IMG/VR virus record: IMGVR_UViG_3300025536_000010 | Span: 170,887-234,886 of that record | Length of the DNA stretch: 64,000 nt | Direction: 5' to 3' (one strand) | Position numbers and translations under genes: made by a program | Part shown: in pieces, positions 6,062 to 36,725 of the stretch | How positions within the stretch are numbered: the stretch's first letter is position 1 | Layout: every line of letters starts with the position of its first letter | Notes under the pieces: generated by a model | What the model was told of the DNA's origin: nothing | Seen by the model: only the letters and a program-made list of their open reading frames with translations | Database searches by the model: none

Positions 6062-6750
6062 CCGGCAAGCAGATCGAGCGCGAGGTGGAGCGAGGCCGCA
6101 TGACCATCTGGCCGTGGAATCCAAAACAGCTGAACCCCAACAGTTACAACTTGTGTTGGGATGCCCATCTCAAGATCTACAAGAAGACGGAGCCGTTGCT
6201 CCGTTGGTATGAAACGCTGGAGAACCTGCGCCAGCGCGGGGCGATGACGACGCTCGAAATGTACACGCTGGCGGGACCGAAACCGATCCTCGAACCGCTC
6301 AACATGCGTACGAAGGAGGAAACGGTCGACCTGCTGATTCCGCCGGACGGCTTGACTCTTTTCCCGGAGATGCTCTACCTGGCCGCGACCGTCGAGTTCG
6401 CCGGCTCGGACTGGTTCATCCCGGAACTGCACGGCCGCTCGTCAATGGGCCGCCTGGGCGTCTTCGTTCACGTCACGGCCGGCTTCGGAGACTGTGGGTT
6501 CTCTGGGCACCCCGAACACACAGACGCCTACGGTGCGCACCAGCAAGACACCCGCGCACAGTGGACCCTCGAAGTCGTGGCTGTCCACCCCATCCGCGTC
6601 TACGCCGGCGTGCAAGTATGCCAAATCTGTTTTGCAAAGCCCGTGCAAGACGCGGACCTTGGAGATCTGCCGCGCTACAGCGGCAAGTACGTCGCCGACC
6701 GCGGCCCGAAGGCGTCCAACCTGTGGAAGGATTTCCTCGAACACGATTAA
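6055..6750 (+). CDS. dcd: dCTP deaminase (dCTP deaminase/dUTPase family)
   Basis: QLNPNSYNL, GRSSMGRLG, TAGFGDCGFSG, WTLEV, VCQICF, YSGKY. Confidence 0.9.
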   Translation: MLTGKQIEREVERGRMTIWPWNPKQLNPNSYNLCWDAHLKIYKKTEPLLRWYETLENLRQRGAMTTLEMYTLAGPKPILEPLNMRTKEETVDLLIPPDGLTLFPEMLYLAATVEFAGSDWFIPELHGRSSMGRLGVFVHVTAGFGDCGFSGHPEHTDAYGAHQQDTRAQWTLEVVAVHPIRVYAGVQVCQICFAKPVQDADLGDLPRYSGKYVADRGPKASNLWKDFLEHD

Positions 6751-9093: not shown

Positions 9094-9288
9094 GAGGGCG
9101 AAGCCTGAGCGCGTGCGAGGCGCGCTCCCGGCGTCGGGGGCGGGAGCGCGCTGAACCTAAAAGCCATATACGAGGAGCCTGCGGCTCTGTCGCCGATGTG
9201 TTGAGGGAAGCCCGCCGTGGTTAAGCGCGACGCTCCCTTGACCCCTTAATAACTTCTTGGGCTCGCGCAGCGCAGCCCAGGAGAGATT

Positions 9289-9355
9289 TATAATAAGTAG
9301 GCTAGCTACTTAGCCTAAGATGTGCCCCAGGTATTAGGCTAACTGTTAGCCTAAT
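9289..9355 (+). promoter_or_regulatory. AT-rich region with TATAAT and two TAGGCTA-N5/6-TAGCCTA palindromes (operator or origin candidate)
   Basis: TATAAT 9289-9294; palindromes 9298-9317 and 9333-9355 (ATTAGGCTAAC-T-GTTAGCCTAAT). Confidence 0.6.
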
Positions 9356-18609: not shown

Positions 18610-18634
18610 TGGCTAAAAGCCACTTTTGAGAACT

Positions 18635-19738
18635 ATGGCACACGACACCCTCTGGCTCTCCGACGCGCACCTGCGCAACCGGAGAGGCGACGAGCAGTTC
18701 GCCCTGCGGCAGTGCATCACGGCCGCGAAGAAACATAAAGTCAAGCAGGTCATCGCCACGGGTGACCTGACCGACCGGCAGACCAACCGTTCTTTGCCCA
18801 TCTCCTTCTGGATGAAGCAGATTGACCGGCTCGAAGAAGCCGGTATCGCTTTCTGGTTCCTCCAGGGCAATCACGACGAAGACGAGCCGCCCTGGCTCTC
18901 GGCGCACCGGCACGCCAAGCACCTGCACAACCGCAGCGTTCAGGTCGGCCCCTACACTGGCTTCGGCCTCGACTTCCAGCCTTTCGGCAAACTGCAAGAG
19001 GTGCTGCCCGAGTTGCCGGCGGAGGCCAACCTGCTCATCTGCCACCAGGCGTGGAGCGAGTGGATGCACTTCGATGACGTCCCCCAGGGGGATTTCGCGC
19101 AGGTGCCGGGACACTTCTCGCACGTTTTCTCCGGGGACTACCACCGCAAGAAGGTGGATAAGTGCAAAAATGCAGACGGCGACAAGATGATCTGCGCCTC
19201 CGTGGGGGCGACCTGCGCTCAGAAGATCGACGAACCCCACGAGCACTACTACTGCCTGATCGGCGACGATGGCCAGCTGCGTTTCGAGAAGCTGCACAGC
19301 CGCGTCTATATCGAGTGGCCAGTCATGAACCGACCGGACGACCTGGATCAGTTCATGGAGGAGTACGACTCGGAACTGGCCAGGGCGGAGCAGCATGCTG
19401 CCGCCAACGACTACCCGGAGACGCTGGTCCGTCCCTACCTGCGCGTCACCTACAGCCACAAGCTGAACGACGCCGTCGCCCGTGTCACGAAGGCAGTTGG
19501 GGAGCGAGCAATCCTTTACTGGAAAGAGATCCCGCCCGAGGACAAGCAGCCGACCAAAAACAAGCCTGCCAAGGTCGGTAAGGAAGAAGCGGTCACACCT
19601 CTGAGCGTACTCGCCCAGGAGGTCGACAAGGAGAAGGAGCCCGAGGTTTTTGAACTCTGCACCCGGCTGCTCCAGGCCCCTGCGACCTTCAAAGAGGAGT
19701 TTGCCCGCTGGAAGGCCGAACGACTGCTGGAGGGGTGA
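18635..19738 (+). CDS. sbcD: SbcD/Mre11-like metallophosphoesterase nuclease
   Basis: SDAH, GDLTD, GNHD, CHQ, GDYH motifs; upstream of sbcC. Confidence 0.88.
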   Translation: MAHDTLWLSDAHLRNRRGDEQFALRQCITAAKKHKVKQVIATGDLTDRQTNRSLPISFWMKQIDRLEEAGIAFWFLQGNHDEDEPPWLSAHRHAKHLHNRSVQVGPYTGFGLDFQPFGKLQEVLPELPAEANLLICHQAWSEWMHFDDVPQGDFAQVPGHFSHVFSGDYHRKKVDKCKNADGDKMICASVGATCAQKIDEPHEHYYCLIGDDGQLRFEKLHSRVYIEWPVMNRPDDLDQFMEEYDSELARAEQHAAANDYPETLVRPYLRVTYSHKLNDAVARVTKAVGERAILYWKEIPPEDKQPTKNKPAKVGKEEAVTPLSVLAQEVDKEKEPEVFELCTRLLQAPATFKEEFARWKAERLLEG

Positions 19739-20960: not shown

Positions 20961-23108
20961 ATGCACTTCCGCAAGCTACACTTCAAGAACGCCTGCCGGT
21001 TCGAGGACTTTCAGGTGGACCTCAAGAAGGGGTCCGTGGGGGTCTTCGGCAAGAACGGCATCGGTAAGAGCACCCTGCTCAACTTCATGTACGCCATACC
21101 CACAAATGACTTCTCGCGCTTCGAGGGGGTCAAGACGGACTGCATCCGCTACGGCGCACCGGAGAAGGCGGAGAGCTTTCTCTACGGCGAGATCGAGCAC
21201 AACGATCACCTGCTGTGCATCAAGCGGAACTTCAAGCCCACCAAGAACAACCCTGGCACGGTGCTGGTGGTCGACGGCGGTAAGGAGATCACTGACGCCA
21301 ACAAGGCCGAGGAAGAGATCGGCAAGATCCTGGGCGTCGACAAGAAGATGCTCGGGCTCTACGCTTTCAAGACCCAGGACCGCATCTACGACTTCCTGAC
21401 GACCACGCCGACCGAGCGAGCCAAGGCATTTGCCGTCCTGTGCCGCACGGAGGTCTGCGAGGAGATGTGGGACTTCCTGGGCGAGTTCCTCAACAAGGAC
21501 AGCGAGATCAACGCCGTTATCGTCGACAACTCCGACGAACTGCTGGCCGAGATCGCGGCGCTCAAGGGCCAGATCGAGGAACTGGATGCCTCGATCAAGC
21601 AGGAAGAGGAGCGGCTGCTCAACTCCAAAAGCGAGGCATCGGCCCGGGACATCCTCAAGAAGCAGGACCGTAAGGAGGATCTGCTCGGGCAGCAGGAGCG
21701 CTTGCAAGCCAGTCTGGAAGAAAGCCAGGTAACGCTGGCCGAGAAGCAGGAGCGCCTGGCTAAGAGCGAGCGTGTGCGCAAGAAGCGCGCCGAGGACGTC
21801 GAAAGTCTTTGCGTAGCCGCGGACGACGCCAAAGCCGCGCTCAAGGCGTGGGACGCCTACAAGAAGTACCGTGCGCGCCGTAAGGCCCTCAACGTGGAAG
21901 CCGAGGCCCTGGACCGCGAGGAGGAGGAGAATAAGCCGCCGGTGCAGCCGAAGGACTACGGCAAGCACGATCTGGACGCACTGCGCAAACAGGTGGTCGA
22001 TATGGAGTCTGCTTTGGACAGGGCCAAAGCCGTTGTCGCCAAGTTCCAAAGCCAAAAGATCGTGGCTTGCCCGACTTGTAACACGCCGGTCACGGATCTG
22101 GCAGATCACCTGAACGAACAGCGCAAGATCGTCCTGGAGTACCCCAAGGAGGTCGAGCGTCTGGATACCATCGTTGAAACGATGACGGTCTACGACAACA
22201 AGGTTCGCAAGTACGAGAAGTGGTCGGCCGGGTTCGAGGCACGGCGCAAAGCCAACCAGGATGCCCGGGCTGCCCTCAAGGGCATCAATACGCCGGACGG
22301 CGACGAGGCTGATCTCAACAAGGTCATCGAACAGTACCAGGAAGCTGTCCAAGCGCTCACGGAGATTGTTGGCAAGGTCGAGAACACACGCCGCGCCGTG
22401 ACGACTGCGGAGGCTGCGCAGGAGGCTACGCAGAAACGATTGGCCGAGGTGGCCGAAGGCGTCGTGGAGAACACGGTCGACGCGGCCAAGGTGGAGCGGG
22501 CCAGGGAGCGCTTGGAGGAGCATATCGCGTCGGGTAAGAACATCGCACGCATCCAGGGCGAGTGGAAGGGCGTGCAGGCGCAGATCGAAAGCAAGGAGGA
22601 AGACCTGCGCAAGCTGCGCAACCGTCTCAAGCGCAGCAAGAAGGTACGGGCTGTGGCCCGGGTGGCCGAGCGGGTGCGGGACGTCTTGCACCGCGACCGG
22701 CTGCCGCGGCGCGTGGCTGCTACCAACCTGTCACGCATGGAGGGTGACATCAACGAGGGCCTGGGTTACTTCGGCGATCCGTTCTGGGTGGAGTCCGACG
22801 AGAGCCTCCAGTTCACGGCGCACAAACCGGGTGAACCGCCACAACCGGCTCTACGGTTGTCGACCGGGCAGAAGGTCGTGTTGGCGATGGCGTTCTGGCC
22901 TGCGGTGGGCTCGCTCTGGCAGCAGGATCTCGGTATGCTGGCCTTGGATGAGCCGACTGCCAATCTGGACGAGGAGAACCGGAAATTCCTCAGTCAGGCC
23001 CTGGGCGCCATGTCGGCCAAATGCCGCGGGCGGCGGCAACTCATTCTCGTGACGCACGACCCAAACCTGGCGAACTCCTTCGACCAGGTTATCAAACTGG
23101 AGACGTAG
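20961..23108 (+). CDS. sbcC: SbcC/Rad50-like SMC ATPase
   Basis: GKNGIGKST, Q-loop, coiled coil with CPTC zinc hook, LSTGQ signature, LALDEPTANLD, VTH. Confidence 0.92.
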   Translation: MHFRKLHFKNACRFEDFQVDLKKGSVGVFGKNGIGKSTLLNFMYAIPTNDFSRFEGVKTDCIRYGAPEKAESFLYGEIEHNDHLLCIKRNFKPTKNNPGTVLVVDGGKEITDANKAEEEIGKILGVDKKMLGLYAFKTQDRIYDFLTTTPTERAKAFAVLCRTEVCEEMWDFLGEFLNKDSEINAVIVDNSDELLAEIAALKGQIEELDASIKQEEERLLNSKSEASARDILKKQDRKEDLLGQQERLQASLEESQVTLAEKQERLAKSERVRKKRAEDVESLCVAADDAKAALKAWDAYKKYRARRKALNVEAEALDREEEENKPPVQPKDYGKHDLDALRKQVVDMESALDRAKAVVAKFQSQKIVACPTCNTPVTDLADHLNEQRKIVLEYPKEVERLDTIVETMTVYDNKVRKYEKWSAGFEARRKANQDARAALKGINTPDGDEADLNKVIEQYQEAVQALTEIVGKVENTRRAVTTAEAAQEATQKRLAEVAEGVVENTVDAAKVERARERLEEHIASGKNIARIQGEWKGVQAQIESKEEDLRKLRNRLKRSKKVRAVARVAERVRDVLHRDRLPRRVAATNLSRMEGDINEGLGYFGDPFWVESDESLQFTAHKPGEPPQPALRLSTGQKVVLAMAFWPAVGSLWQQDLGMLALDEPTANLDEENRKFLSQALGAMSAKCRGRRQLILVTHDPNLANSFDQVIKLET

Positions 23109-23110
23109 CC

Positions 23111-24088
23111 ATGTCCACCGCCGCGCTCGACTGCGTGAACATCTTGCGTCTGCACACAGACGACGAGGGCGTGGTGTGGTTCGGCGACGATTACCAGTTG
23201 GCTATCAACAGTGAAACCAGAGCGTCAGACTTTTTCGAGTCTGACGCTCTGGGTATCGAACTCAAACACGTCCGTAAGGTGCGGCTGCTAGGCACACGGG
23301 CTAACGCCCCGCTTATCGTCCGCCTGGCGCAGACACGCTGTCGTGACCACAACGTCCAGATTCAACTCGGCTCGCCGGCTTTGGTGCCAACCAGGGCAGC
23401 ACGCGGCGACCCAACTACTGTGTTGCAGTATCTGTGGCAGCCCAGCTACAGCAGCACCTGCCCCGGCATGTGGCACGCTTTCGCTGAACACGACTTCCCT
23501 GGCTACTTGATGCTCAGCGAGTTGCGGGAGAAGCAAGCTGCTTGCCTTGGGGTCGGCAGCTTCCAGGAAGTGCCCGACGTCGTGAAACGCACCGCTCGCT
23601 ACCACCCAGCCTGGCCAGCAGTCACGTTCGTCCCTTGGCTGGATCACAACTGGGCCTGTCGGCTGCTTTGCGAGATTATCGACCCTCGTTGGTTCATCCA
23701 CCCGCAACGACCAGACCGGCCGTCCAGACTGTTCAATCATCTGGGCCTCACGCCGCGGAACATGGGCGCGTTTCTCCAGCAGGGCTTCCCGGACCCGCAC
23801 TACTACCAGGCTACCACAGCACTGCGCTGCTGGTACAATCGAGGCATGCCTCAGAGCCGTAGTGGTCCGGGGAGTTTCCTCTGGCGTGCCTACCTGTCGA
23901 CCGACAACCAGGTCAAAGGTCTGCTGCGCGGTACGCAGCAACTGGTGCGGCTGATCCAGTCGGTGTGGTTGCAAACAGTCGTCCGACCGCACCCTGAATT
24001 CCGGTTTCAACCAATCAAGTTTTTCAAAGATCCAGCCGAAGCGGAGGCGTTCGAGCAGCACCGAGCGTCTTGTAAACCAGTGGAATGA
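23111..24088 (+). CDS. IS110-transposase/Nop-domain-like protein, apparently catalytically inactive
   Basis: HPAWPAVTFVPWL...ACRLLCEIIDPRWF...SRLFNHLGLTP matches the IS110 C-terminal pattern LL.EI.D..RF...L..Y.GL.P; the N-terminal RuvC-like part lacks the DEDD residues. Confidence 0.6.
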   Translation: MSTAALDCVNILRLHTDDEGVVWFGDDYQLAINSETRASDFFESDALGIELKHVRKVRLLGTRANAPLIVRLAQTRCRDHNVQIQLGSPALVPTRAARGDPTTVLQYLWQPSYSSTCPGMWHAFAEHDFPGYLMLSELREKQAACLGVGSFQEVPDVVKRTARYHPAWPAVTFVPWLDHNWACRLLCEIIDPRWFIHPQRPDRPSRLFNHLGLTPRNMGAFLQQGFPDPHYYQATTALRCWYNRGMPQSRSGPGSFLWRAYLSTDNQVKGLLRGTQQLVRLIQSVWLQTVVRPHPEFRFQPIKFFKDPAEAEAFEQHRASCKPVE

Positions 24089-24100
24089 GCGGTTGCCCTG

Positions 24101-24109
24101 TGGTAAAAT
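24101..24109 (+). promoter_or_regulatory. Extended -10 promoter element upstream of the RAMP-like gene
   Basis: TGGTAAAAT (TGnTAnAAT) ending 38 nt before ATG 24148. Confidence 0.5.
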
Positions 24110-24147
24110 ATACCCACGTCAACCGTCGCACAGAGGGAAGGGAAGCC

Positions 24148-24672
24148 ATGCGGGAACTAACCGTACGGATACGGTTTCGGGAACACTGTATTGGTAACGC
24201 CAAGGAGGCCAACGGGGGCTACCGGCTACTGCTGCCGCGGAACCCGTTTGGGCGTATCGTTTTTCCGGCCAGTTGGCACCGATCCAATCTCAGGTTCGCC
24301 GCGCAACTGCTTGGGCGACACCAGGACGAGGCCCAGAAGATCCTCTGGGACGTAGAGGTTGACGGCTACGTCCGCAAAGGCGGCTGGTTCAAACGGCAGT
24401 ACCAAACCAACGACGGTAGGCCGCGCCATGCCCTGCACGAGGCGTTTTTGCCGGGGCAGGTGGTCGGTATCAACTGCGTGGTGCCGGCGACCATCCCCGA
24501 CGACGATTTCATCAGCCTGATGAACATCGCGGGGCGTTACAAGGGTTTGAGCCCGCACGGCCCTGGTCAGTTTGGCTTTTTCGAGGTCGAGAGCGTCCGA
24601 CCGCGCCGGGCGGCGCAGCCGGGCGAAGGAGAGCAGCATGACGAAGGGGTGAAACAATGGAAGCACGTCTAG
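24148..24672 (+). CDS. Stand-alone RAMP-superfamily (Cas7/Csm3-like) protein, 174 aa
   Basis: LTVRIRFREHCIG (first strand plus Gly), GRIVFPASWHRSNLRFAA (P.S..R..LR helix), HEAFLPG, LMNIAGRYKGLSPHGPGQFGFFEV (Gly-rich loop plus last strand). Confidence 0.65.
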   Translation: MRELTVRIRFREHCIGNAKEANGGYRLLLPRNPFGRIVFPASWHRSNLRFAAQLLGRHQDEAQKILWDVEVDGYVRKGGWFKRQYQTNDGRPRHALHEAFLPGQVVGINCVVPATIPDDDFISLMNIAGRYKGLSPHGPGQFGFFEVESVRPRRAAQPGEGEQHDEGVKQWKHV

Positions 24673-24795
24673 CTGCCAACTAGACGTGCCTCCATAGCGG
24701 TGACGGCTTGTTCCGGTGTGCTGGTGGAACCATAAGCCTGTTCTAACTATACCCCGCCGCCACCCCAGTTTCAACTCTATTCCAGTTTTTGGAGT
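24663..24795 (+). ncRNA. Candidate structured RNA between the RAMP and helicase genes
   Basis: Perfect 10-bp stem GCACGTCTAG/CTAGACGTGC (24663-24689); second bulged stem ATAG..ACGGCTT-GTTCC/GGAAC..AAGCC.GT..CTAT (about 24694-24750). Confidence 0.35.
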
Positions 24796-24804
24796 GGCGA
24801 AGCT

Positions 24805-26373
24805 ATGCGCAAGAAGATCACCGTCCTGCGGACGGATGACAAGATCGTCGTCGAACCGACCACGCGCCGCGTACGAGCGCTGATCGAGCAAGACCTCACC
24901 TACATCGAAAAGAGCTTCTTTCACGGCTACGAGCGCAAGAAGCGGCTCAAACACGGCCTGCCGCCTTTCGAGGAAATCGAGTGGCAGTGTTACGGTGAGG
25001 ATCACAAGGGCAGGCTCTCCACGTCCTGGGGCTTCTGCGAGCGCATCGTGGACCTGCTGGAGAAGGACGGCTACCCGGTCGAGGTGCGCTGGGCTACCAA
25101 GGGCAACCAGGAGGAGGCTGCGCAGCGCGCCGAGACGGTCTACAAGCCTCGCTGGGACCGCATCGAGCAGCTGGAAGCGGATGGCTTCAAGTTCCGCTAC
25201 AAACAGCGGAAGGCCCTCAATCTAATAGCCACTTTTGAGAACGGCCGCATCTCGTGCCCCCCTGCCTGGGGCAAGGGCACCCTTATCATGCTGGCCAGTG
25301 TCCTCTTCCCCAAGGCCAAGATTGCCGTGGTCACCGACCGCGTCGACGTTCTCCAGACCCGGCTCTATCCCGAACTGGCCATGAATCTACCCTCGGTAGG
25401 TATCGTGGGTGGGGGCATGCGCCGCAAGGGTCGGCGAGTCATGTGCTACACCGCAGACAGCCTGCACCACTGCCCGAACGACGTGGACTTTGTGTTCGTG
25501 GACGAGGGCCACGAGGCGTGTGCCGACAAGTTCGCGGAGTCGATGGGCAAGTTCAGTAAAGCCAGGATCTGGATGTTCTCGGCAACCTGGGATATGCGCC
25601 TGGACAACAAGGACATCCGTGCCGAGGCGATGGCTGGCAAGATCCGCCTGCACGTCCCGTACCAGAAGGCCGTCGAACACGGCATGGTCGTCCCAGTCGA
25701 GGTCATCTGGGACGACGTCATCATGGACGAAAACCCGTGCTCGGGTCTGGACGGCGTGGACAAGGATCGGGCTGGCATCTGGGCCAACGACTATCGCAAC
25801 AAGCTGATCGCCAAGAACAGCGGCCTGTACGGCCCGGAGGTCCAGGAACTTATCACCTGCAAGACGCTCGAACACGCTCTGCACCTCAAAAAGATTTTGC
25901 CGGGTCACGTCCTGGTCTACTCAGGACAGCAACTCAAGGACCGGGACATCCGCTGGTTTCGTGACTGCGGCCTCATCGACGACACCTGGCGGCCGATGAC
26001 GATGGAGAAGCGTAAGCGGCTGACCAAACGCTTCGAGCGCGGTAAGCTCAAGAAGGCCATCGCCACCACGGTTTGGAACGTGGGTGTGAACTTCAAGCAG
26101 CTGGCCGTCGTCAACCGGGCGGACGCGGGCGGTTCGCCGATCAACGACACACAGATCCCTGGACGCGGCGCGCGTATCGACGACGTCTCGGGTAAGAAGA
26201 AGCTCTGTGCCATCATCCACGATTACAAGGACCAGTTCGACACAGGCACGCGGATGAAAGCCGAGCGCCGAGGAAAGTCTTATGACGCCAACGAGTGGCG
26301 TCAGCATCACCCAAAGAAGGAGAAGCGGTCGCTGTTGCGGCAGCTGATGGAATGGGGGAACCCACTCAAATGA
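24805..26373 (+). CDS. Superfamily 2 (DExH) helicase
   Basis: CPPAWGKGT, VDEGH, SAT, IATTVWNVGVN, QIPGRGAR. Confidence 0.9.
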   Translation: MRKKITVLRTDDKIVVEPTTRRVRALIEQDLTYIEKSFFHGYERKKRLKHGLPPFEEIEWQCYGEDHKGRLSTSWGFCERIVDLLEKDGYPVEVRWATKGNQEEAAQRAETVYKPRWDRIEQLEADGFKFRYKQRKALNLIATFENGRISCPPAWGKGTLIMLASVLFPKAKIAVVTDRVDVLQTRLYPELAMNLPSVGIVGGGMRRKGRRVMCYTADSLHHCPNDVDFVFVDEGHEACADKFAESMGKFSKARIWMFSATWDMRLDNKDIRAEAMAGKIRLHVPYQKAVEHGMVVPVEVIWDDVIMDENPCSGLDGVDKDRAGIWANDYRNKLIAKNSGLYGPEVQELITCKTLEHALHLKKILPGHVLVYSGQQLKDRDIRWFRDCGLIDDTWRPMTMEKRKRLTKRFERGKLKKAIATTVWNVGVNFKQLAVVNRADAGGSPINDTQIPGRGARIDDVSGKKKLCAIIHDYKDQFDTGTRMKAERRGKSYDANEWRQHHPKKEKRSLLRQLMEWGNPLK

Positions 26374-34553: not shown

Positions 34554-36725
34554 ATGGCAACGAAACGTTTGGCAGCACGCAAGCCCGCCGATTACGACAG
34601 CCGCGTCCACGGGCGCCGCGAGACGAACATTCCCCAGGACGACCACACCATCAACGAGGGCATCTGCCCCGTCAACCTGCTGCGCCCGCGGTACGATGAC
34701 GGCCCCATGTACTTCATCCCGTTCAAGCACCCCAGCTACGAAGACCCGGAGAACATGCTCCAGCCGGGCCGTACTGCCCCGGAACCGGGTGCTTACTCGC
34801 ACTGGCTGATCCGTATGGAGGTCGCGGCTTACATCGGCTTGCCGGACTGCACGAAGCACAGCTTCAACCTGCGCCACCCGGCCGACAAGGAGGCCAAGAA
34901 GGGCAACCCCTACCGCGAGTTGTACTTCGCCGCTGCCCAGGCGCACGATAACGGTCAGTTCGGGAACGGCAAGAAATGGGACAGCAGCTGGAACAAGTTC
35001 CTCAAGGGGAGCAAGAAGTCCGGCGGTGCAGCGCTGTCCCGTCCCACTGCCAAGTATTTCGTCCAGGGCGCCGTGTTCTGCAACGGCGACCGCGACTACA
35101 TGGAAGGCGACCGCGAGTTGCCGTTCGGTTTGGCCCAGGGTGACGACCTGACGGTCATTCAGATCCCGGTGTCCGCCGGCCAGGGTATCATCAAGCTGCT
35201 GGACATCGAGAAGGACCAGTACGAAGGCAACGGCGAAGACGATCCTTCGGCCCCGTTCAAGTGGGGTGATCCGACTGGTCGGTTCAAGAAGAAGGCGCGC
35301 ACCATCTCCGGCTGCAAGGTCTTCTGCATCTACAACCCGAAGAAGACCAAGATCAAGCAGGACACCTCGTTCAGCGGGGAGTTCAAGGAGATCCAGGGCT
35401 ACGAGGCCGCCATCAAGGAAGCCTACAAGGCCGGCGGGCAGGTGCTGTTCGACGGCAACTTGGAAACCAAGCAGGTCGATTTCATCTTCGAGCACGCGCA
35501 GTTCTGGTTCGACGACGAAGACAGCGGCACCAAGGGGCTGTTGCGCATCGCACCCGTGGAACAGCAGGCGCTGTGGGTCGCCCAGGCGTTCAAGTCGGCT
35601 CCGAAGCTGATTGCCTTCGCCTGGTCCGAGCAAGAGGGCCTCATGACCGACGAGGTCAAGGCCGTCTTGGCGGCGCGTGTCAGCGCTGTCGTCCCCGGCG
35701 AGGACGACGACGATGACGACGATGAGGACGATGAGACGCCGAAGCGCAAGGTGAAGAAAGACCCGAGCGCCAAGGCCGGCAAGAAGGCCAAGCCCGAGGC
35801 CGACGACGAAGATGATGATGAAGACGACGAGGAGGAAACCTCGAAGAAGGGCAAGAAGCCTGCCAAGGGCAAGAAGGCCAAGGACGAGGAAGACGAGGAA
35901 GACGAGTTCGAGGACGACGAAGACTCGGACGACGACTCGGACGACGACGAAGAGGAGGACGAGAAGCCGGCCAAGAAGGGTAAGAGCAAGAAGGCCAAGG
36001 ACGACGACGAGGACGACGACTCCGACGACGAAGAGGAGGACGACGACTCCGACGACGAAGACGACTCCGACGAGGACGACGACTCCGACGACGAAGAGGA
36101 GGACGACGACTCCGACGACGAAGAGGAGGACGACGACTCCGACGACGAAGACGACTCCGACGAAGAGGAGGACGAGAAGCCGGCCAAGAAGGGTAAGAGC
36201 AAGAAGCCCGCGGCCGAGGACGACGAAGAGGAGGAGGACGACGACTCCGACGACGAAGACGACGAAGAGGAGGAGGACGACGACTCCGAGGACGACGACT
36301 CCGACGACGAAGACGACGAAGAGGAGGAGGACGACGACGAAGACGACGAGAAGCCGGCCAAGAAGGGTAAGAAGCCTGCGGCCAAGGACGACGACGAAGA
36401 GGAGGACGACGAAGACGACGAAGAGGAGGACGAGGACGACGACAAGCCGACCAAGAAGGGCAGCAAGGACAAGAAGCCCGCTGCCAAGGTCGGGAAGAAG
36501 CCCGAAGCCAAGGCCGAGAAGCCGGCTGCCAAGAAGGGCAAGGGCAAGAAGGGCGACGAGGAGGACTACTTCGGCGATAGCGACGCCGGCAAGGCCGCTA
36601 GCAAGTCCGCGAAGGCCGCCAAGGCCGCCAAGGACAACTCGGCCAAGCGCGGGTCGGCACCGAAGAAGGAAGCTCCCAAGCCTCCGGCGAGCAAGGGCGG
36701 TAGCGCCAAGCGCAAGCAGAAGTAG
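34554..36725 (+). CDS. Probable ssDNA-binding/recombination mediator protein with a roughly 340-aa D/E/K low-complexity tail
   Basis: Position between polA and recA, strong codon bias, own terminator, acidic tail; the fold is not recognised directly. Confidence 0.55.
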   Translation: MATKRLAARKPADYDSRVHGRRETNIPQDDHTINEGICPVNLLRPRYDDGPMYFIPFKHPSYEDPENMLQPGRTAPEPGAYSHWLIRMEVAAYIGLPDCTKHSFNLRHPADKEAKKGNPYRELYFAAAQAHDNGQFGNGKKWDSSWNKFLKGSKKSGGAALSRPTAKYFVQGAVFCNGDRDYMEGDRELPFGLAQGDDLTVIQIPVSAGQGIIKLLDIEKDQYEGNGEDDPSAPFKWGDPTGRFKKKARTISGCKVFCIYNPKKTKIKQDTSFSGEFKEIQGYEAAIKEAYKAGGQVLFDGNLETKQVDFIFEHAQFWFDDEDSGTKGLLRIAPVEQQALWVAQAFKSAPKLIAFAWSEQEGLMTDEVKAVLAARVSAVVPGEDDDDDDDEDDETPKRKVKKDPSAKAGKKAKPEADDEDDDEDDEEETSKKGKKPAKGKKAKDEEDEEDEFEDDEDSDDDSDDDEEEDEKPAKKGKSKKAKDDDEDDDSDDEEEDDDSDDEDDSDEDDDSDDEEEDDDSDDEEEDDDSDDEDDSDEEEDEKPAKKGKSKKPAAEDDEEEEDDDSDDEDDEEEEDDDSEDDDSDDEDDEEEEDDDEDDEKPAKKGKKPAAKDDDEEEDDEDDEEEDEDDDKPTKKGSKDKKPAAKVGKKPEAKAEKPAAKKGKGKKGDEEDYFGDSDAGKAASKSAKAAKAAKDNSAKRGSAPKKEAPKPPASKGGSAKRKQK
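35700..36560 (+). repeat. Coding low-complexity tandem repeats (GAC/GAA/GAG runs; DDDSDDEEE and EKPAKKGK units)
   Basis: Repeated gacgacgactccgacgacgaagaggag and gagaagccggccaagaagggtaag. Confidence 0.9.

Follow-up and report, generated by a model that had tools for sequence, protein, structure and literature searches.

Two adjacent genes of a large uncultured phage, here designated A and B, encode proteins with two different guide-RNA-binding folds, both apparently without catalytic activity, and behave as core genes at the end of an SbcD-SbcC operon with no guide array in their vicinity. We propose, with a probability of roughly 0.4, that A and B are inherited vertically and work as a pair that binds nucleic acid without cutting it, in the service of the phage's own replication or recombination. 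The DNA analysed, called the window below, is a stretch of 64,000 nt (positions 170,887-234,886 of IMGVR_UViG_3300025536_000010, a genome of 234,886 bp). It contains a block of the order SbcD-SbcC-A-B-spacer-helicase-p279-DnaB-primase-PolA, and gene A, gene B, spacer and helicase all lie on the + strand, within the interval 23111-26373 noted originally. The relevant features are as follows.

18626..19738, + strand: SbcD/Mre11-like phosphoesterase (Pfam Metallophos 2e-8; PHROG 100 'SbcD-like' 4e-11)
20961..23108, + strand: SbcC/Rad50-like SMC ATPase (PHROG 77 'SbcC-like' 1.4e-45; Pfam AAA_15, SMC_N and AAA_23)
23111..24088, + strand: gene A, 325 aa, nuclease-dead Tas/IS110-like protein with RNase H/RuvC-like fold and Nop/Tnp homology
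23217..23252: perfect inverted repeat of 15-16 bp within the coding sequence of gene A (hairpin scan)
24148..24672, + strand: gene B, 174 aa, minimal single-RRM RAMP of Cas7/Vipr type (AF2 model, Foldseek, homologue starts)
24663..24689, + strand: hairpin H1, perfect 10-bp stem, loop CTGCCAA (fold and hairpin scans)
24705..24738, + strand: hairpin H2, stems GGCTT+GTTCC / GGAAC..AAGCC, loop GGTGTGCTGGT (fold prediction)
24741..24804, + strand: AT-richer stretch with -10-like TTCTA/ACTATA, a third small hairpin and the helicase ribosome-binding site GGAG
24805..26373, + strand: SF2 DExH helicase, 522 aa (P-loop GKGT, motif II DEGH)

Protein A had been predicted to be an inactive relative of IS110 and Nop-domain proteins, and both parts of this assignment stand. 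Its N-terminal domain (about aa 1-125) is RNase H/RuvC-like, with b1-b2-b3-a1-b4-a2-b5 topology in the AF2 model (pLDDT 92.9), and is followed by a long helix and a helical C-terminal domain. The first part of the latter (about aa 140-215), where Pfam, PHROG and NCBIfam matches coincide, is homologous to the Nop/Tnp domain of TIGR-Tas and IS110. The NCBIfam model TIGR_Tas_endo (NF052498) matches the window protein with E 0.017 (aa 157-214) and 77 of 136 members of family A (best 2.1e-9); all scores are nevertheless far below the curated cut-off of 100 bits, and because no member reaches it, family A is a distant sister family of Tas and not an equivalog. One member (P0074) matches Pfam Transposase_20 with 24.0 bits, above the gathering score of 21.3, and three of the 136 match the IS110 NCBIfam model; hhalign found nothing between family A and an alignment of the IS4321 group, a template of low diversity. 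The top PDB fold match is TIGR-TasR 9mty (Science 2025, PMC12045711), a weak one (E 0.14, prob 0.72). The domain order, RuvC-like and then Nop/Tnp, is that of IS110 recombinases and of Nop5/Prp31.

IS110 enzymes employ a DEDD tetrad and a catalytic serine, whereas family A lacks both, although the Transposase_20 domain is present in P0074. Column counts over 136 sequences did not find a conserved RuvC tetrad: D17 is kept in 58% and D100, without a second Asp, in 53%, and invariant G61 and variable T62 occupy the expected Glu position. Likewise, no conserved Ser follows the LGLTP motif in alignments of 45 and 136 sequences. Judging from these unconserved positions, no catalysis is expected, and the RuvC site of Nop5 is dead as well (PMC11213020). 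Unlike IS110, a mobile element, gene A has no element ends or second copies; in about 100 loci it is a single-copy gene with a fixed position between SbcC and B. Family A comprises 1040 clusters at 50% identity, with lengths of 270-353 aa, mostly about 300-330, among the 150 clusters listed. In its size of about 325 aa and its phage origin, A resembles the dead TasR of stem-loop TIGR-Tas (PateTasR, 329 aa, and CsTasR; bioRxiv 10.64898/2026.09.09.750476). The inverted repeat inside gene A is the longest perfect hairpin of the window and probably does not belong to the module; across relatives gene A is no richer in long hairpins than SbcC, and their positions vary.

Gene B lies in an open reading frame spanning 24085-24672. 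Because every homologue begins at MREL, its real start is ATG 24148, which is preceded by the ribosome-binding site GAGGGAAGGGAAG. The protein has no Pfam, PHROG, NCBIfam or PADLOC match within the E limits used (Pfam 0.1, later 1; others 0.1); at E <= 1, Pfam yielded chance-level matches alone, e.g. DUF6074 with E 0.19. Its AF2 model (pLDDT 89.6), in which the C-terminal tail (aa 160-174) is disordered and unconserved, gave 99 PDB matches with Foldseek at E <= 1e-3 (best 2.6e-6). Every one of the 50 matches listed is a class 1 CRISPR subunit of the Cas7 family (Csm3, Cmr4, and Cas7 of types I, III, IV and VII), and the original prediction of a RAMP is thereby borne out. Cas7 backbone subunits, including type IV Csf2, which works with the DinG helicase, and type VII Cas7, are the closest solved folds (TM about 0.55-0.6). 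The best BFVD match, a viral protein of 194 aa, is annotated as 'RAMP superfamily protein' (6.7e-7), and the viral RAMPs returned are 194-208 aa long. B differs from Cas7 subunits in being shorter, with a single RRM, and in having no conserved Csm3-type catalytic Asp: its b1-a1 loop, which we take to be the place of that residue in Csm3, contains no invariant acidic residue, and on this ground catalysis is not expected.

The second known relative of B is Vipr. Like Vipr of SUSP1 (PDB 36pp), B is a phage-encoded, stand-alone RAMP of about 20 kDa, and the RRM core, G-loop and thumb typical of VIPR are found in it. Alignment of the two families by hhalign (prob 83%, E 8.7e-6) extends over 36 columns, covers the helix-2/G-loop/last-strand region only and contains a common G-loop signature, AG-Y-GL--W-P--G-F-V. 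In this alignment D177 of SUSP1 Vipr, which reads G1, falls on an invariant Pro of B; the W178 column holds W in most relatives of B and H in the window protein, and the R179 column K in most relatives and G in the window protein. The GGY-reading residues H17 and R138 are outside the alignable region, and nothing in the secondary structure of B points to the helical bundle that is inserted in type II Vipr. The invariant polar and aromatic residues of B, among them W43, H44, N47, D68, H97, C110, S135-P136 and P139, are of the kind expected if B reads specific bases of a fixed ligand, as Vipr reads GGY.

Both genes are located in a replication cluster, as had been stated, surrounded by SbcD, SbcC, a DnaB-like helicase, primase and PolA (Pfam, PHROG) as well as by a ligase and a UvsX-like ATPase. 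The SbcD/Mre11-like gene heads the upstream block and is syntenic in related loci. The SbcC stop codon is 2 nt upstream of the gene A start, and in relatives the two genes abut or overlap. The best PADLOC match of SbcC is LmuB (3.5e-30). The helicase, previously recognised as DExH/SF2, carries GKGT and DEGH motifs, matches Helicase_C and PHROG 16 'DNA helicase', is weakly similar to the C-terminal part of RecG and has no sequence relative in PDB; it is the first gene of the downstream replication block and directly follows B in nearly all relatives. The surrounding gene set is similar to that of T4-type recombination-dependent replication (gp46/47 Mre11-Rad50, UvsW SF2 helicase, gp41/61 helicase-primase). 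We know of no T4-type module with a RAMP or a Nop-domain protein.

The order SbcD-SbcC-A-B-helicase-p279-DnaB-primase-PolA is common to about 100 loci on contigs of large uncultured phages (up to 235 kb) from marine (TARA, marine-metagenome) and many other metagenomes, so that the gene-neighbourhood survey suggested earlier does recover a conserved A-B linkage. Because the whole nine-gene block is equally syntenic, adjacency of A and B alone is little informative. In most relatives -8 to +17 nt separate A from B, and most lineages show start/stop overlaps or gaps of 2-12 nt. Conservation within the block is highest for B, with a median identity of 49.8% (primase 42%, helicase 41%, A 30%, SbcC 29%). 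A is missing in a few relatives (L014, L039/L040 and L076) and B in one (L001), so neither protein strictly requires the other. Among 185,579 cellular genomes the B family is nearly lacking, its three matches all lying on MAG contigs. A and B thus behave like vertically inherited core genes and not like a mobile competition cassette, which speaks against the simplest form of the RNA-guided module originally predicted.

Arrays resembling vrRNA, TIGR or CRISPR were found neither in the 64-kb window nor in 690 kb of related loci, and in about 100 relatives the 3-10 kb around A/B contain no guide array. As claimed before, repeat scans detect no CRISPR array in the window. PADLOC gave no Cas match for A, B or p279, and among the directly adjacent genes no Cas5, Cas6 or large-subunit partner was recognised with Pfam, PADLOC or NCBIfam. 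Type IV CRISPR, in which a Cas7 filament and an SF2 helicase bind without cutting, can be likened to B and its helicase; class 1 systems, however, combine an array with a multi-subunit effector (Cas5, Cas7, large subunit) or adaptation genes, while B neighbours SbcCD, helicase, DnaB and primase. In VIPR systems the vipr gene is flanked by vrRNAs, in which a pentanucleotide (YNNGG, or NN with some other fixed trinucleotide) is repeated 9-16 times or more. None occur at gene B: period-5 scans for GGY and for any fixed trinucleotide stayed at shuffle level in the window (maximum 22/30, against 21-23 in shuffles) and in the 690 kb of relatives (at most 24, in A-rich stretches). The same scanner recovered all four SUSP1 vrRNAs, used as positive control, with 27-29 of 30. 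TIGR arrays, of dual-repeat (units about 36 nt) or stem-loop type, reside beside or inside tas, and gene A has none. Stem-loop units contain two 8-12-nt spacers plus box C/D; loops of H1 and H2 (3-12 nt) are too short for two such spacers, and TIGR-like units (arm + CTT + 22-60 nt + arm) are unenriched, occurring in 5 of 67 spacers between B and helicase against 6.1 in shuffles. TRF and direct-repeat scans of the window returned coding acidic repeats only, with no tandem or interspaced array, and TRF on the relatives' 690 kb returned nothing near A. Since the window covers only 27% of the genome, guides may be encoded farther away.

The spacer between B and helicase (24673-24804) is 132 nt long and agrees with the hairpin-rich intergenic DNA of about 130 nt noted originally: it folds better than 200/200 dinucleotide shuffles (z = -2.7). 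The gene B stop codon is situated within the 5' arm of H1, and no U-tract follows H1 in the window. Most of the 67 distinct spacers have a hairpin of 10-17 bp at this position, with differing, covarying stems and related loops (CTGCCAA, GTGCCAA, GTGGCA, GGCGAA, TGACGAA). Related spacers also contain a recurring second hairpin with GT-rich loop (GTGTTTG, GTATG, TGTATT and similar), the covariation of H2 being judged by eye only because MAFFT failed to align it across clades. The AT-richer stretch probably provides the downstream block with its promoter and 5' leader; its ATTCTA/ATTTTA/ACTATA motif recurs at the corresponding place in relatives, and a sigma-70 consensus scan found no + strand promoter in it. 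A scan of the whole window with Rfam, whose library may hold no bridge-RNA family, gave no match at gathering threshold.

Our preferred explanation is that two guide-RNA-binding folds would have been fixed as core genes behind SbcD-SbcC for a task in DNA metabolism. B protomers may line up and coat a segment of single-stranded RNA or ssDNA, as Cas7 and Vipr do, and A, with its dead RuvC-like and Nop-type domains, may bind structured or branched nucleic acid in the manner of nuclease-dead TasR. Their joint role would be to mark or stabilise intermediates such as R-loops, primers or resected ends, which SbcCD and the downstream helicase would then process. Joint action of A and B, the nature of their ligand and a connection to replication or recombination are what we infer, the tie to SbcCD or replication coming from gene position; the replication/repair setting and the lack of a nearby guide array suggest that such "RNA-guided" folds may serve phage DNA metabolism. 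To our knowledge, all characterised members of both superfamilies use a dedicated guide RNA (Nop5, Prp31, IS110 and Tas; Cas7 and Vipr), so a guide-less role would be a first, and this counts against the preferred explanation, as do the invariant residues of B suggestive of base-specific recognition.

It is somewhat unlikely that A and B instead form a true RNA-guided, non-cutting DNA binder, a hybrid of VIPR and TIGR types with guides elsewhere in the 235-kb genome. In such a complex B would polymerise on the guide RNA, A would cap or read a structured handle and the helicase would be an accessory enzyme, silencing competing phages or satellites, or the host. Phage-borne RNA-guided proteins that bind DNA and repress transcription without cutting are known for both folds, namely dead TasR/TasA (bioRxiv 10.64898/2026.09.09.750476) and Vipr (bioRxiv 10.64898/2026.04.26.720920). 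The latter has one or two adjoining accessory genes, sometimes helicases, and helicase or nuclease genes accompany types III-V (same preprint); B, too, lies near a helicase, yet this one belongs to the next gene block. Known arrays flank or lie inside the effector gene, which is not the case here, but tas loci without arrays are common (6,685 arrays for 20,096 loci; bioRxiv 10.64898/2026.09.09.750476) and solo vrRNAs distant from vipr exist (bioRxiv 10.64898/2026.04.26.720920 and.720927). The G-loop of B carries the Vipr signature, with Pro in place of the G1-reading D177, and the A-B start/stop overlaps suggest co-translation. Against the hybrid stand the fixed place in a replication operon, the strict vertical inheritance and the highest conservation of the block, all unlike competition cassettes, and the near-absence from proviruses and cellular genomes: Vipr is a proviral or defence-island gene (VIPR being 56% proviral and 25% chromosomal; bioRxiv 10.64898/2026.04.26.720920), B a core gene on large viral metagenome contigs. 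Folds, catalytic inactivity of A, A-B linkage, structured spacer and helicase are as originally described; the RNA-guided ribonucleoprotein predicted from them is unproven, and the missing arrays speak against its simplest form. We also consider unlikely a third kind of phage ribonucleoprotein, built from a Tas-like Nop protein and a Vipr/Cas7-like RAMP on one shared RNA, either a guide encoded elsewhere in the genome or an origin or primer transcript. Such a complex would direct sequence-specific DNA binding without cutting, to control the phage's own replication or to silence rivals.

Improbable, in our view, is that the spacer itself provides the RNA partner, with B and/or A binding H1/H2 at the 3' terminus of the mRNA that encodes them in a Cas6-like or K-loop-like mode, or that the hairpins function in ssDNA form in a replication origin. 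Binding of this kind could process or stabilise the transcript, autoregulate it or control read-through into the helicase-polymerase block. Recurrence of H1 on the B stop codon with no consistent U-tract, a 20-fold enrichment of long hairpins in the spacer, a single occurrence of the H1 loop motif in the window and a length held near 100-195 nt (85 loci) in an otherwise gap-free operon would fit such a role. H1, however, persists in the locus without B, with an identical loop (CTGCCAA), and in L014, L039 and L076 without A; and some relatives (L002, L010, L051 and L110) have no spacer, B abutting the helicase. Moreover, structural neighbours of B are Cas7 and not Cas6, other intergenic regions of the phage also have strong, terminator-like GC hairpins, and cumulative GC skew does not turn at the spacer. 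The persistence of H1, and the position of the spacer, which divides A/B, tightly packed behind SbcCD, from the helicase block, also weigh against the simplest form of the module predicted earlier. Nor do we find it probable that A and B are functionally unrelated, being neighbours merely through tight operon packing and inheritance as a block. Their independent losses, the widely different evolutionary rates (median identity 30% for A and 50% for B) and the equal synteny of all nine genes are compatible with this, but the A-B overlaps and short gaps argue for a connection, and two guide-RNA-binding folds would hardly become adjacent by chance among about 300 genes.

The statement that no described system pairs these two folds holds for the TIGR and VIPR literature examined. 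Phage counterparts of both halves have by now been described, namely dead TasR repressors for A and Vipr for B. Descriptions of nuclease-dead Tas and of stand-alone phage RAMPs date only from 2025-2026 and present each as a self-contained, array-linked system of conflict between mobile elements. In the locus presented here both folds are adjacent, have no local array and behave as core genes of a replication/repair operon. The uncultured jumbo-phage lineage that carries them is very large, with over 1000 clusters at 50% identity. If no programmable guide is involved, guide-RNA machinery would have been co-opted for housekeeping, the reverse of the usual story; if a distal guide is used, the pair would be a new composite effector, and a ribonucleoprotein of the third kind would represent a living link between the TIGR/IS110 and VIPR/CRISPR lineages. 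Either way, A and B offer a concrete, small pair to test (174 + 325 aa).

The region 23111-26373 had originally been predicted to encode an undescribed RNA-guided, non-cutting module, composed of an inactive IS110/Nop-like protein (gene A), a stand-alone RAMP (gene B), a structured RNA and an SF2 helicase. Genes A and B, the spacer and the helicase are all located where they had been placed, in a stretch of the window with the following features:

18626-19738, + strand: SbcD-like gene
between the SbcD-like and SbcC-like genes, + strand: 186-aa ORF
20961-23108, + strand: SbcC-like ATPase gene
23111-24088, + strand: gene A
24085-24672, + strand: ORF containing gene B (start 24148, 174 aa)
24673-24804: 132-nt spacer between B and the helicase
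24805-26373, + strand: DExH helicase gene (P-loop GKGT, motif II DEGH)
downstream of the helicase, + strand, in this order: 279-aa ORF, DnaB-like helicase, primase and 1137-aa polymerase genes

The start of B was set at 24148 because all B homologues begin at MREL; it is preceded by a purine-rich ribosome-binding site. The SbcC-like ATPase matches the PADLOC model of Lamassu LmuB (3.5e-30). Assignment to Lamassu was rejected, as this match is weaker than that to the SbcC PHROG and an SbcD partner is present; given this partner, the LmuB score probably reflects shared SMC ancestry.

The folds proposed for both proteins are borne out. The A protein of the window matches no Pfam family; several profile libraries agree on its residues 140-215, and it is matched by PHROG 4285 "transposase" (E 0.05) and NCBIfam NF052498 "TIGR-Tas RNA-guided endonuclease" (E 0.017). 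For a divergent family member, P0074, the E-value is 3.7e-8 with NF052498 and 1.6e-5 with the IS110 model; with Pfam Transposase_20 it scores 24.0 bits, which exceeds the gathering score of 21.3 bits. When 136 family-A members were scanned singly, 77 matched the Tas model and three the IS110 model, and no further family was matched by more than one member. The NCBIfam Tas model is far more sensitive than the Pfam scan, which found Transposase_20 in just 2/136. Neither the profiles A1 and A3 nor P0074 itself have a match among PDB sequences. Comparison of family A with IS4321 by hhalign gave no match with the single sequence, nor with a 13-sequence alignment (Neff 1.7), but the template is too uniform for this to inform. 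A word-index search yielded only IS110 proteins at least 70% identical.

In the confident AlphaFold model of A (pLDDT 92.9), an N-terminal RNase H/RuvC-like domain with b1-b2-b3-a1-b4-a2-b5 topology is followed by a long helix and then by a C-domain made of helices. Among PDB folds its top match, TIGR-TasR (9mty), scores weakly (E 0.14) yet is specific, as both chains rank in the best four. Acidic positions of the RuvC tetrad are not conserved (D17 58%, D100 53%, an invariant Gly at the expected Glu), and no Ser follows the LGLTP motif. From these profile and fold matches, the unconserved tetrad and the missing Ser it follows that A is a Tas/IS110-like protein with a Nop domain and a dead nuclease. 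Of the proteins described so far, catalytically dead TasR repressors come closest, for example PateTasR with 329 aa (bioRxiv 10.64898/2026.09.09.750476). A FEN/5'-nuclease or NurA identity was rejected for lack of a conserved acidic cluster and of such fold matches. Within the coding sequence of A, an inverted repeat (23217-23252) pairs perfectly over 15-16 bp around a loop of 4-6 nt; no perfect hairpin of the window is longer. In other genes of family A, hairpins of 13-17 bp occur at variable positions. An intragenic tigRNA was rejected, since the 16-bp hairpin is no family-wide feature and long hairpins are about as dense in A (0.11/kb) as in SbcC (0.10/kb).

Gene B has no significant match in any profile library, and Pfam at E <= 1 gave chance-level matches alone. 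At E <= 1e-3, its AlphaFold model (pLDDT 89.6) has 99 matches in the PDB; the best 50 are, without exception, backbone subunits of Cas7 type (Csm3, Cmr4 and Cas7 of types I, IV and VII). The viral structure library gives stand-alone RAMPs of viruses, 194-208 aa long, as top matches. No conserved acidic residue is found at the position of the catalytic Asp of Csm3. The family-B profile weakly matches the PDB chain "SUSP1 Vipr protein". VIPR systems, described in preprints of 2026, comprise a phage RAMP of about 20 kDa, an accessory gene and vrRNAs with 9-16 YNNGG repeats, located on the flanks of the RAMP gene (bioRxiv 10.64898/2026.04.26.720920 and.720927). Profile-profile comparison of family B with Vipr, represented by the SUSP1 gene plus four more from phages, gave a probability of 83% (E 8.7e-6), limited to the helix-2/G-loop/last-strand region. 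The Asp with which SUSP1 Vipr reads the first G is aligned with an invariant Pro of B.

The order SbcD-SbcC-A-B-helicase-p279 (the 279-aa ORF product)-DnaB-primase-PolA is maintained across 21 viral and 80 metagenome loci, and the expected linkage of A and B is conserved with it. B is immediately preceded by A except in four loci (L014, L039/L040 and L076); in the A-less relatives, at least three in number (L014 5981-6001; L039; L076), it directly follows SbcC. B is absent from one relative, L001, where A is followed by a 198-nt spacer (L001 10972-11170). The helicase lies downstream of B wherever the contig extends far enough. SbcC and A abut or overlap, and A-B gaps mostly range from -8 to +17 nt. 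The window's own A-B gap (24089-24147) measures 59 nt, compared with 47-60 nt in the closest relatives and 2-12 nt or overlap in most others; its TGGTAAAATATAC stretch may serve B as an internal promoter.

Of the proteins in the block, B is conserved best, with a median identity to the window copy of 49.8%, followed by primase (42%), helicase (41%), A (30%) and SbcC (29%). Family A forms 1040 clusters at 50% identity in a 1.8-billion-protein library. Among 185,579 cellular genomes, B occurs on just three contigs, all from MAGs of unrelated phyla, and DNA and tblastn searches of 50,697 GenBank phages found neither A, B nor the pair. No isolate exceeds 27% identity in the polymerase, so there is no cultured relative. 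A and B are thus distributed like the core genes of a jumbo-phage lineage that is large and uncultured, rather than like a mobile cassette.

Several further features accompany the block. In this lineage the PolA-type polymerase includes a domain of the UDG family (PF03167 + PF00476; L001 16238-19669, L002 17505-20783). PfkB kinase and cytidylyltransferase genes, fused in L002, lie upstream in the same relatives and hint at nucleotide or DNA modification. A CsrA-family gene (PF02599) is located just upstream of SbcD in L002, a 228-kb relative (6115-6330, - strand). In the window, an extremely acidic 723-aa ORF without PHROG match (34554-36725) separates the polymerase block from a UvsX-like ATPase; it contains a long imperfect Asp/Glu-rich repeat tract (repeats 35680-36580) interspersed with KKGK motifs.

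The "structured RNA" of the original prediction proved to be a real and conserved element. None of 200 shuffles of the spacer folds as well as the spacer itself (z = -2.7); it is enriched 20-fold in hairpins whose stems reach 12 bp or more, and the loop motif of its first hairpin, H1 (24663-24689), is unique in the window. In 85 loci, with 67 distinct sequences, B and the helicase are set apart by a spacer of 80-220 nt (mostly about 100-195 nt); in some others, such as L002, L010, L047 and L110, about 8-34 nt or an overlap is found instead. In L086 (3540-4096) and L087 (3498-4022) the gap reaches 520-555 nt, which would accommodate an inserted small gene or a non-coding element of greater length. 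H1 opens the spacer on or just past the B stop codon, with stems of 10-17 bp that differ between loci, related loops (CTGCCAA, GTGCCAA, GTGGCA, GGCGAA, TGACGAA) and no consistent U-tract after it. Further along come another hairpin, whose loop is GT-rich, an ATTCTA/ACTATA motif and the ribosome-binding site of the helicase. The cross-clade MAFFT alignment of spacers was unusable; the H1 statistics take the loop as their anchor and are partly circular, stems of at least 7 bp having been pre-selected. Elsewhere in the window, a 260-nt intergenic region (9094-9353) has a very strong predicted structure (-125 kcal/mol), in which a repeated palindrome, TTAGGCTAA/TTAGCCTAA, forms two hairpins immediately ahead of the next gene; these may be operators or a small RNA.

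Guide arrays of every known kind were sought in the last 64 kb of the 234,886-bp IMG/VR contig (IMGVR_UViG_3300025536_000010, Ga0207952_1000023), which is the window, and in 690 kb of related loci. Period-5 scans for GGY, GG or G found none above chance. With any fixed trinucleotide, the window maximum of 22/30 equals that of shuffles (21-23), while identical code recovered all four SUSP1 vrRNAs with scores of 27-29; the maximum in the relatives was 24, in A-rich stretches. Searches for tandem and interspaced repeats in both sets yielded nothing but an acidic repeat within coding sequence. In the spacers, stem-loop-TIGR-like units with CUU at the base of the stem are not overrepresented, and no Rfam family reached the gathering threshold anywhere in the window.

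The tests that bear specifically on RNA-guided interference were negative or neutral: no local array was found, the RNA element is kept without A or B, and the distribution is not that of a mobile cassette. A guided silencer whose guides would be encoded distally is unlikely. That A and B bind the spacer RNA, or regulate through the spacer, would agree with the conservation of this structured element. However, B-less L001 and A-less L014, L039 and L076 act as natural "knock-outs", and all retain H1, with an identical loop in L001; moreover, terminator-like GC hairpins occur in other intergenic regions of the phage. The simplest reading of the spacer is an operon boundary, with a hairpin at the 3' end and, after it, a promoter with its leader; the spacer may still be an RNA or ssDNA ligand, and we consider the involvement of A and B with it quite improbable. 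Mere adjacency of the two genes seems equally improbable.

Because the tests of a guided module were negative or neutral, we favour, with a probability of about 0.4, that A and B would have been recruited as a non-cutting nucleic-acid-binding pair acting in the SbcCD-linked replication or recombination of the phage itself. As originally stated, the pairing of the two folds is apparently undescribed: the TIGR papers make no mention of a RAMP, nor the VIPR papers of an IS110 or Nop protein. Each half, the Tas-like A and the RAMP B, does now have a described counterpart; their combination, the absence of an array and their behaviour as core genes are unusual and deserve experiment.
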